The notes: generated from the letters alone by a model not told the origin. DNA of 64,000 nucleotides from Octopus sinensis (GCF_006345805.1 NC_043007.1:13144001-13208000), one strand, 5' to 3'; positions 35,714 to 36,913 are shown, counted from the first letter of the stretch. Numbers and translations: made by a program.

Positions 35714-36913
35714 TTAATATGCCCAATAATTTTGACTTAATCCATTGGCATATCTCTGAAAGAACTGCGAAGACAGCTGGGCCCTGCGCTCTTCCTTGCG
35801 TTGAGCCAAAGCTACATACAATGGTTTGGTATCAATAATTCTGCCATTCATATTCAGAGCAGCCTCGGTCGCTTCTTCTGGCGCGGAAAAACAGACAAAT
35901 CCAAATCCCTTAGAACGGCCGTTTATCATCATAACTTTTGCGCTTGTAATGGCACCGTATTTAGAGAAATGGTAACGAAGTCGTTCATCATCGATGGAAT
36001 CATCAAGATTTTTAATGTATAGATTGAGACCTTGGTAGTGGCCGATCCTGCTCCTGTTTCCTCGATTGCTTAGCGTCTGGAAATTTTCTTTTAAAATAGC
36101 TTGTCTTTCAGTCTTGCTCTGAGCCCTACCAGCATATAACTGCTTTCCATTAATCTCCATCCCATTGATTTCACTGGTAGCTTTCTTAGCATCCTCTTGG
36201 TTATTGAAGTTAACAAAACCGAATCCTTTTGACTTACCGGAGCTATCTGTCATAACTTTAGCGCTGATGACGTTGCCGTACTTTTCGAATAGTTTACGGA
36301 GAGATTCGTCGTTGAAGCTATCGCCAAAATTTTTAACATACACATTAGTAAATCCTTTTTCGGCCAGTTGGTGCATCCTCTCCCTGCGTGGAATAAATTT
36401 TCCTACAAACACTTTCTTGCCGTTAAGTAACATTCCATTTGTTTTCTGAACACAACAGGCAGCAGCATCTTCACTCTCAAAATGCACAAACCCGTATCCC
36501 TTTGAACCGTTTTCATCCGATACAATTTTACTGGATAAAATATTACCAAACAAAGAAAAGGTGTCATACAGAGCTCGGTTATCAATACTTTTATCCAGGT
36601 TCTTAATAAAGATGTTTCCCACCCCAGACTTACGAAGAGAGGGATCTCTCTGCCACCACATAATTCTTATGGGTCGTCCCATTATTGGTTCAAAGTTTAG
36701 CATTTCAATCGCTTTCTTGGCATTTGTTGGTTGCTGGAAATTGACGTAGGCGTATCCCAGCGATCTCCTTTTCACCATATCTCTGCAAACCCTTATTGAA
36801 ATCACTGTCCCACAGATAGAGAATTTCTCGAACAGCATTTTTTCGGTGACATCTTGATGAAGATCTCCGACATACAGGGAAGCCATGTGGAGAATAGCTG
36901 CCGCAGGATTCAT
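35714..36913 (-). CDS. PABP: Intronless cytoplasmic poly(A)-binding protein-like gene, 399 aa, RRM1-4 only (no Pro-rich linker, no MLLE/PABC domain)
   Basis: The track ORF starts at a TTG (36988); the real ATG is at 36913 ([18 protein letters not shown], cf. PABPC1 [18 protein letters not shown]). All four RNP2/RNP1 pairs are intact ([56 protein letters not shown]). The ORF ends [37 protein letters not shown]. Confidence 0.93.

Follow-up and report, generated by a model that had tools for sequence, protein, structure and literature searches.

Can a poly(A)-binding protein (PABP) of the cytoplasmic kind that lacks its C-terminal half be a lasting, functional gene, and if so, how did such a gene arise and what would its product do? 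PABPs of this kind, consisting of RNA recognition motifs (RRMs) only, are known in vertebrates (PABPC5, PABPC4L) and are still poorly understood. The question is raised here by a stretch of 64,000 nucleotides from Octopus sinensis (GCF_006345805.1, NC_043007.1:13144001-13208000; the window, to which positions refer unless another locus is named), the minus strand of which carries an intronless open reading frame (ORF) for a PABP with four RRMs and no MLLE domain. The comparisons set out below indicate that this ORF is probably a long-conserved, functional octopod gene for an RRM-only cytoplasmic PABP, which would have originated through one old retroposition of an mRNA resembling that of a full-length cuttlefish PABP (PABP-B), followed later by tandem duplication, and whose product would form a poly(A) coat without MLLE docking.

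A single ORF extends over 35714..36988 on the minus strand, and its ATG at 36913, which matches the start of canonical PABPs in sequence comparison, opens a coding sequence of 399 codons closed by TAA. An ORF of 399 codons is far beyond chance in DNA of 30-38% G+C, and it is the sole non-repetitive ORF of more than 200 residues within the window; the same protein is annotated in Octopus sinensis GCA_006345805.1 on chromosome CM016869.1 at ~13.17-13.19 Mb. Pfam searches of the encoded protein returned four RRM_1 domains (E = 5.5e-81) and no PF00658 (MLLE), and its ribonucleoprotein motifs RNP1 and RNP2 all have the canonical PABPC form (8/8). Among proteins of known structure, the best phmmer matches were to yeast Pab1 (6R5K, 3.9e-134, residues 10-387) and RRM1-2 of human PABPC1 (1CVJ and 4F02, 8e-87). 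An AlphaFold2 model generated from a 16-sequence alignment comprises four beta-alpha-beta-beta-alpha-beta RRM folds and a helix at residues 373-394 following RRM4, with a mean predicted local distance difference test score (pLDDT) of 81; low confidence is limited to the N-terminus, the loop 285-293 (pLDDT < 50), which corresponds to an insertion in the linker between RRM3 and RRM4, and the last six residues, which form a disordered end. With four RRMs, an end soon after RRM4, and neither proline-rich linker nor MLLE, the protein has the RRM-only architecture of PABPC5 and PABPC4L.

The missing C-terminal half was also sought outside the reading frame. Searches by tblastn with octopus and cuttlefish linker-MLLE C-termini (E <= 10) identified no similarity to linker or MLLE anywhere in the 64-kb window, including the 35.7 kb past the stop codon, and a six-frame scan of the whole window for KITGMLLE and LGERLFP was likewise empty. 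The same two procedures found no MLLE or linker in four related loci, orthologous ones included, and recovered their positive controls. A first-pass annotation of this DNA had described an intact single-exon ORF of 399 residues at these coordinates with its RNP motifs kept, a missing MLLE, a serine-to-tryptophan change in the conserved MWSQRDP sequence, and an insertion of ~5 residues between RRM3 and RRM4. The ORF listing, Pfam result and motif reading agree with the first of these points, and the empty searches with the second. The substitution is seen in our alignment as W87 (codon 36653-36655; MWWQRDP versus MWSQRDP), in place of a serine invariant across 12 full-length PABPs drawn from cephalopods, gastropods, bivalves, an insect, a horseshoe crab and a coelacanth; the insertion is present as well, its length being four residues rather than five, and so is the new tail that the annotation had noted.

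Evidence that the gene has been maintained comes from its orthologues. A cluster formed at 90% identity to the ORF protein contained three relevant members, from O. bimaculoides, Argonauta hians and a further Octopus species. The O. bimaculoides protein (XP_014773726.1), a gene model already present in RefSeq under a generic name, also has 399 residues and differs from that of O. sinensis at two of them, and the protein of the further Octopus species shows a single difference. The Argonauta protein (GAB1601324.1) is annotated from its second Met, the upstream MNPAAAILH being present in Argonauta DNA, and differs from the O. sinensis protein at 12/390 positions. Identity among the Octopus and Argonauta proteins of this gene, hereafter type 1, amounts to 97-99.5%, and to 98% between Octopus and Argonauta over RRM columns; the tail reads ANGLNQNYWAF in Argonauta and ends in NYWAY in Octopus. 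The O. bimaculoides and Argonauta loci both possess an uninterrupted coding sequence with its stop at the same position, and are syntenic, with three genera counted. Ratios of nonsynonymous to synonymous substitution rates (dN/dS), estimated by NG86 and YN00 in five pairwise comparisons, range over ~0.02-0.05. For O. sinensis the respective estimates are 0.031 and 0.051 against O. bimaculoides (dS of 0.067 by NG86), 0.012 and 0.019 against the third Octopus, and 0.019 and 0.032 against Argonauta, for which dN is 0.016 and dS is 0.84 by NG86 (range 0.55-0.84). Because ratios of 0.02-0.05 are sustained at dS of up to 0.84, the substitution pattern excludes neutral drift and places the type-1 gene under very strong purifying selection; by the same comparisons, it is neither a recent nor a lineage-private retrocopy.

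Conservation is not confined to the coding sequence. Relative to O. bimaculoides, a block that begins 473 bp upstream of the ATG and reaches ~870 bp beyond the stop shows 95% identity, versus 88-91% in the surrounding DNA, and the alignment with Argonauta spans window positions 37192-35354, with both flanks conserved well above the synonymous level (Table 1). A block at ~36970-37170 on the minus strand carries an ACGTCA motif, resembling a cAMP response element, and a CAGCTG motif (E-box); with dS relative to Argonauta at ~0.8, it is probably a core promoter or 5' untranslated region (UTR). The 3' flank retains two AATAAA hexamers in the Argonauta alignment (35417-35422 and 35396-35401), and ACCAATAAATATT in this flank is conserved between Octopus and Argonauta. 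A further AATAAA close to the stop (35679-35684, 30 nt past it) is not conserved in Argonauta. Given that ORF, 5' block and 3' flank are conserved together, they likely form an unspliced transcription unit of ~1.8 kb.

Further RRM-only genes exist beside type 1. Querying with a relative of 399 residues (P0007) uncovered a second octopod RRM-only PABP of 397 residues, type 2, represented by XP_052827885.1 in O. bimaculoides, XP_036362973.1 in O. sinensis, CAI9729800.1 in O. vulgaris and GAB1601323.1 in Argonauta. In O. bimaculoides, 28.3 kb lie between type 1 and the downstream type 2; in Argonauta, the spacing is 11.4 kb. In O. sinensis, type 2 is placed just off the left edge of the window, ~36 kb from type 1, because homology to the region ~0.56 kb upstream of the type-2 ATG reaches window position 1 (window 1-593 matches a type-2 locus, L016 4438-3853), so that the window contains the entire ~36 kb between the paired genes. 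Both genes are single exons on the same strand, and they share the truncation point, W87 and two linker indels, whereas their proteins are 65-69% identical and end in different tails, and type 2 evolves at a dN/dS of 0.10 versus 0.02 for type 1. A third RRM-only lineage, from a cephalopod (P0007/P0142), also consists of single-exon genes without MLLE that encode 396-399 residues. In public read assemblies (ERZ21867824; ERR14857105 and others), six or more variants of its sequence occur, and it is also represented by one 72.8-kb genomic contig; two of its species, compared with each other, give a dN/dS of 0.03-0.05. With 69% identity the lineage is, by sequence, too divergent to be an incirrate octopod type-1 orthologue.

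Position 87 is tryptophan in the three lineages (MWW, MHW and MQW, versus the invariant MWS), and all three also share a deletion of two to three residues with a K-to-G change before RRM3 (..GFTNVY), an insertion of four residues before RRM4, and the same end point. Since S87W, the insertion and the truncation point are common to at least three RRM-only lineages, these features, which had initially been noted in one gene, are better regarded as family characters. Altogether, 17 of the 224 RRM-region columns that are invariant in the 12 full-length PABPs are altered in all four RRM-only sequences compared (4/4), and seven of the 17 have changed to one common residue (I47V, D70E, K78M, S87W, K113R, C128S and T147S). 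Many changes at invariant sites on the stem of the family, followed by near-stasis, would fit a changed but important function. The tandem duplication that gave rise to types 1 and 2 would predate the Octopus-Argonauta split, and a single retroposition with a subsequent local duplication of DNA accounts best for the pair.

To which PABP this family is related was examined in a neighbour-joining tree of 371 gap-free columns (300 bootstraps; a vertebrate PABPC1 as outgroup). Cephalopod PABPs form a group with 73% support, the RRM-only family is recovered at 100%, and its union with the cuttlefish 642-residue PABP-B (CAE1241689.1) at 100%, while octopod and decapod PABPs of 630-648 residues (PABP-A) form a separate clade, also at 100%. 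As the RRM-only genes nest inside cephalopod PABPs, the family is, on this placement, a cephalopod invention independent of vertebrate PABPC5, in line with the independent evolution suggested at first; orthology with PABPC5, itself outside the tree, is on this indirect evidence not supported, given the 73% support for a placement among cephalopod PABPs and the 100% for the union with Sepia PABP-B. The closest full-length relative is thus PABP-B of Sepia pharaonis, with 75% identity overall and 77% over RRM columns (type-1 identity to full-length PABPs being 68-77%), and two sequence signatures in common with PABP-B agree with this position in the tree. Unlike the octopus gene, PABP-B is split into nine coding exons that occupy 27.6 kb, encodes a linker and an MLLE, and has MWSQRDP in its canonical form. 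Two sequences of the PABP-B cluster, P0127 (420 residues) and P0128 (345 residues), were considered as natural RRM-only isoforms and rejected, being N-terminally truncated fragments that keep the MLLE.

Our search found no PABP-B orthologue in octopods. The full-length octopus PABP-A (XP_029650094.1) has 630 residues including an MLLE and is encoded by a single coding exon of 1893 bp (O. sinensis CM016881.1; L008 2001-3893); inspection of its 3' flank revealed no clear retrogene hallmarks. The coding sequences of all three PABPC-like genes found in octopus, namely PABP-A and the two RRM-only genes, are therefore intronless (3/3), and among the cephalopod PABPs of this analysis, cuttlefish PABP-B alone has a coding sequence interrupted by introns. 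Considering that cuttlefish PABP-B has nine coding exons and the abalone PABP eleven, this suggests retrogene replacement of the ancestral PABP gene in octopus.

The origin of the RRM-only genes can be read from the introns that they lack. The PABP gene of abalone (Haliotis) extends over 14 kb with eleven coding exons, and its first six exon boundaries coincide with those of Sepia PABP-B, after residues ~64, 129, 169, 222, 246 and 325, from which it follows that these six introns were present in the ancestor common to PABP-B and the RRM-only genes. None of the six is present in the RRM-only ORF (6/6 absent). Losing every intron at once is what passage through a cDNA intermediate classically leaves behind. 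Because the closest full-length relative has nine exons and all six shared introns are missing here, an RNA-mediated origin is likely, and old retroposition is the best reading of the gene's origin from its structure: one such event, acting on a PABP-B-type mRNA, would have removed all introns of the RRM region together. The probable retrogene proposed in the first-pass annotation hence stands as regards an RNA-mediated origin and calls for correction as regards age and uniqueness, the gene being shared by Octopus and Argonauta and one of a tandem pair. The intron-containing parent that it called for has a candidate counterpart in cuttlefish PABP-B, the sister gene, while none was found in any octopod; the alternative of a parent that is also intronless holds for PABP-A, the sole octopus full-length PABP, which is not the closest relative.

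The point at which the proteins end suggests what the founding template may have been. RRM-only proteins terminate 3-5 codons past the position of the boundary between exon 7 and intron 7 of the abalone gene. Haliotis exon 7 ends ...QYMQRMTTMRQQ/GTACAC (..MTTMRQQ; donor CAG/GTACAC, the slash marking the boundary), and reading through into the intron yields VHMV-stop (L018 4750-4770). By comparison, type 1 ends Q/NYWAY-stop, type 2 ends LLQKLHSKPTQ/LCF-stop, and the third lineage ends QFFLRNQMAWQ/FPVC-stop. The bases that immediately follow this Q in type 2, TTATGT in O. bimaculoides and ATATGT in Argonauta, match a GTATGT donor at 5/6 positions (L016, L017 ~6180-6194). A gene model of Elysia crispata (P0325, 398 residues), located on a 10-kb contig, resembles a canonical PABP that has been cut short at this very exon boundary; it was rejected as a homologue of the RRM-only family and serves as an illustration of the boundary only. 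We propose that the founding cDNA was copied from a transcript terminated in the intron that follows the exon of the RRM4 helix, since a template ending in that intron would account for all family members stopping 3-5 codons past the boundary. Such termination of the template within the intron is a tentative suggestion, to which we give an even chance or slightly less.

Several observations weigh against this history of retroposition and intronic termination. As octopus PABP-A is itself intronless in its coding sequence, the loss of introns could date to a full-length intermediate, and intronlessness alone is weak evidence in a genome whose full-length PABP is also a single exon. No target-site duplications were found, there being no direct repeats flanking the unit except microsatellites, and no poly(A) remnant or conserved A-tract was found beside it, such that neither lends positive support; erosion of both is expected for an old insertion. 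Sepia PABP-B possesses no intron at the proposed truncation boundary, so that the presence of intron 7 in the cephalopod ancestor rests on gastropods and requires a later loss in PABP-B. The tree is a neighbour-joining reconstruction of 371 columns with fast-evolving ingroup branches. Finally, Logan contigs (L023-L026 and L001-L006) were considered as transcripts of the gene and rejected: their sequences follow the genome colinearly, beginning within (TA)n and finishing in A-rich stretches, and they may be genomic, because their breaks fall at microsatellites and repeats, as those of assembly graphs do.

The intronlessness of PABP-A and the missing boundary intron of Sepia PABP-B lend themselves to another account, in which an intronless full-length copy, whether a retrocopy or a duplicate of an intronless gene, lost its linker and MLLE secondarily by nonsense mutation, frameshift or deletion, the match to an exon boundary being a matter of chance. 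The dissimilar tails NYWAY, FPVC and LCF would suit this account. Against it, three lineages stop within 3-5 codons of one homologous point, read-through of the abalone intron yields a product of the same size, type 2 retains a donor-like TATGT precisely there, and no remnant of linker or MLLE was found downstream at any of the four loci (4/4). We consider secondary truncation unlikely, with enough in its favour to be kept in mind. Far less probable is that the ORF represents the first exon of a longer gene spliced to a downstream exon with linker and MLLE. Octopus introns can be very long, but similarity to linker or MLLE is missing from the 35.7 kb downstream, a stretch that comes within ~0.56 kb of the next gene, and this one too has no MLLE; moreover, stop and tail are conserved in Argonauta at a dN/dS of ~0.02, ~300 nt of 3' flank with AATAAA are kept, and the two other lineages stop at this point as well. 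Nor is there any appreciable chance that the ORF is a young processed pseudogene, for which a dN/dS of about 1 had been envisaged, or an intact retrocopy drifting neutrally. A single exon and an AATAAA with an A-rich stretch soon past the stop would be in keeping with this idea, which is nevertheless refuted by the substitution pattern (dN/dS of 0.02-0.05 at dS of up to 0.84, in a gene shared by Octopus and Argonauta and syntenic in three genera), by the conserved flanks, and by the lack of conservation of that stop-proximal AATAAA.

Returning to an RRM-only protein founded by retroposition, what might it do? In full-length PABPs, the MLLE docks PAM2 proteins and the linker supports cooperative assembly. 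With its RNP motifs intact, the octopus protein would bind poly(A), and in the absence of an MLLE, docking of PAM2 partners (PAN3, TOB, GW182, eRF3, PAIP1/2, LARP4 and ATXN2) would be lost, as would the linker's support for cooperative assembly. It would accordingly coat and protect tails, probably in some restricted tissue such as the ovary, without coupling them to the deadenylation and regulation that depend on the MLLE, and the closed loop may still be supported by it. The contacts of PABPC1 with eIF4G in RRM2 involve T118, M161, L162 and D165 (PMC10546976). Because equivalents of T118, M161 and L162 are kept in the octopus protein, eIF4G binding is predicted to be probably retained; position 165 is G, as it is in all mollusc full-length PABPs.

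Known PABPs with which the octopus protein can be compared resemble it in part. Mammalian PABPC5, along with PABPC4L, likewise has four RRMs and ends soon after RRM4 without proline-rich linker or MLLE; the octopus gene differs in its independent origin next to PABP-B, its membership of a tandem pair and its own synapomorphies (S87W and two linker indels). PABPC5 is ~65% identical to PABPC1 and its RRMs alone counteract repression and decay directed by Pumilio/CCR4-NOT (PMC12873600), and it is reported to be ovary-enriched (PMC12873600, PMC10546976). The mammalian retrogene PABPs, human PABPC3 and mouse testis Pabp2/Pabpc2, are similarly intronless, and are retroposed, expressed and tissue-restricted (references listed in PMC12873600); they differ in being full-length, with linker and MLLE kept. 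A third comparison, with neuPABP (PABPC1L2A/B), an MLLE-less PABPC paralogue of tissue-specific expression (PMC10546976), raises a competing view of function, namely that the octopus protein would serve as a competitor or repressor, displacing full-length PABP and reducing translation. In its favour, neuPABP represses translation in vitro (PMC10546976), and the 17 otherwise invariant RRM positions changed in the RRM-only family include T for V/M at 158, beside the eIF4G contact M161. However, neuPABP has lost eIF4G binding, a failure traced to substitution of its T118, L162 and D165 equivalents (PMC10546976), whereas the octopus protein keeps four RRMs together with its T118, M161 and L162 equivalents, its G165 being common to mollusc full-length PABPs. 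A repressor is thus a minority view that we find rather doubtful and, by analogy with PABPC5, the most likely function of the octopus RRM-only PABP would be that of a tail-protecting poly(A) coat.

Published data provide a lead on where the gene may be expressed. A housekeeping PABP is not expected to be silent in testis, and only PABP-A and the two RRM-only genes were found in O. sinensis; for both reasons, the gene EVM0003110 may plausibly correspond to one of the paired genes. In gonad RNA-seq of O. sinensis, this 'polyadenylate-binding protein (Pabpc1)' reaches 0.36 fragments per kilobase per million (FPKM) in testis and 829 in ovary (PMC11202624). Its identification with the type-1 gene was considered and is an unproven link, the paper giving no sequence, primers or coordinates for EVM0003110 (PMC11202624). 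It might be speculated, with little confidence, that a retroposed family derived from an intron-terminated isoform, along with intronless PABP-A, fully replaced the ancestral gene in octopods, and that a member of the tandem pair is the ovary Pabpc1, a protector of maternal tails blind to PAM2-dependent deadenylation and convergent with vertebrate oocyte and ovary PABPs.

Table 1. Features of the type-1 RRM-only PABP locus and its surroundings, in window positions
Feature	Position	Strand	Basis and remarks
Type-1 RRM-only PABP coding sequence, single exon	35714..36913	-	399 codons + TAA at 35714-35716; start and stop same in O. bimaculoides and Argonauta
RRM1 (residues 11-89), ending at the MWWQRDP junction	36647..36883	-	Pfam, AlphaFold
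RRM2 (residues 99-175)	36389..36619	-	Human T118, M161 and L162 equivalents kept; alignment; residue list from PMC10546976
RRM3 (residues 189-266)	36116..36349	-	Upstream deletion of 2 residues and K-to-G (..AEKGFTNVY), common to RRM-only lineages; Pfam, alignment
RRM3-RRM4 linker with 4-residue insertion	36029..36076	-	Holds both differences from O. bimaculoides; alignment, pLDDT
RRM4 (residues 296-372)	35798..36028	-	Pfam, AlphaFold
Post-RRM4 helix and tail (residues 373-399)	35717..35797	-	Full-length PABP homology to Q394, then NYWAY and stop where abalone has its exon 7/intron 7 boundary
5' flank, conserved (putative core promoter and 5' UTR)	36914..37192	-	Octopus and Argonauta share 76-90% identity in the block ~36970-37170
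3' flank, conserved (putative 3' UTR)	35354..35713	-	~300 nt are 70-82% identical to Argonauta
Insertion relative to O. bimaculoides, a by-product and not part of the gene	37966..38063	-	Lies ~1.1 kb upstream of the ATG; assembled from two stretches of this gene's coding sequence

Other observations were made around the locus. The insertion listed last in Table 1 consists of ~95 bp that replace ~10 bp of the O. bimaculoides sequence, and its two pieces correspond to 36524-36551 in RRM2 (27/28 identical) and 36752-36826 in RRM1 (74/75), joined over a 5-nt AAATT overlap and sharing an ATAC microhomology with the flank at the end. From this structure it looks like recent templated filler from break repair with template switching rather than an exon. 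Microsatellites of the (TA)n/(TATG)n and (GA)n types bracket the gene (33750-34450, 37380-37520, 35170-35290 and many others), give rise to spurious 'YIYIYI' ORFs, and are sites at which short-read contigs break. In the intergenic region, an ORF of 173 residues at 10671-11189 on the minus strand matches zf-RVT (E = 7e-07) and represents a fragment of a long interspersed nuclear element. At the locus of the third RRM-only lineage (L013 12957-13045), an element of 70-90 bp shows 80-89% identity to a multi-copy octopus element and may be a conserved core of a short interspersed nuclear element; apart from one such element, this locus has no repeats in common with the cuttlefish or octopus loci.

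We found no published description of RRM-only PABPs in cephalopods, of how they arose or of their occurrence as a tandem pair, nor any paper on these accessions. The architecture is of a known kind, the cephalopod family is new and independently evolved, and its gene models are already in RefSeq; the practical consequence is modest, in that the names 'polyadenylate-binding protein 1' and '1-like' given there hide the lack of the C-terminal half. For the biology of the family, the 17 shifted RRM positions provide candidate sites for what changes in a PABP once the MLLE is gone. Held under strong constraint since at least the Octopus-Argonauta split, the gene indicates that an MLLE-less poly(A) coat would be a recurrent, selected solution rather than a decaying copy, and the locus, on the origin favoured here, would record the part of retroposition in remodelling a core family of translation factors in cephalopods.

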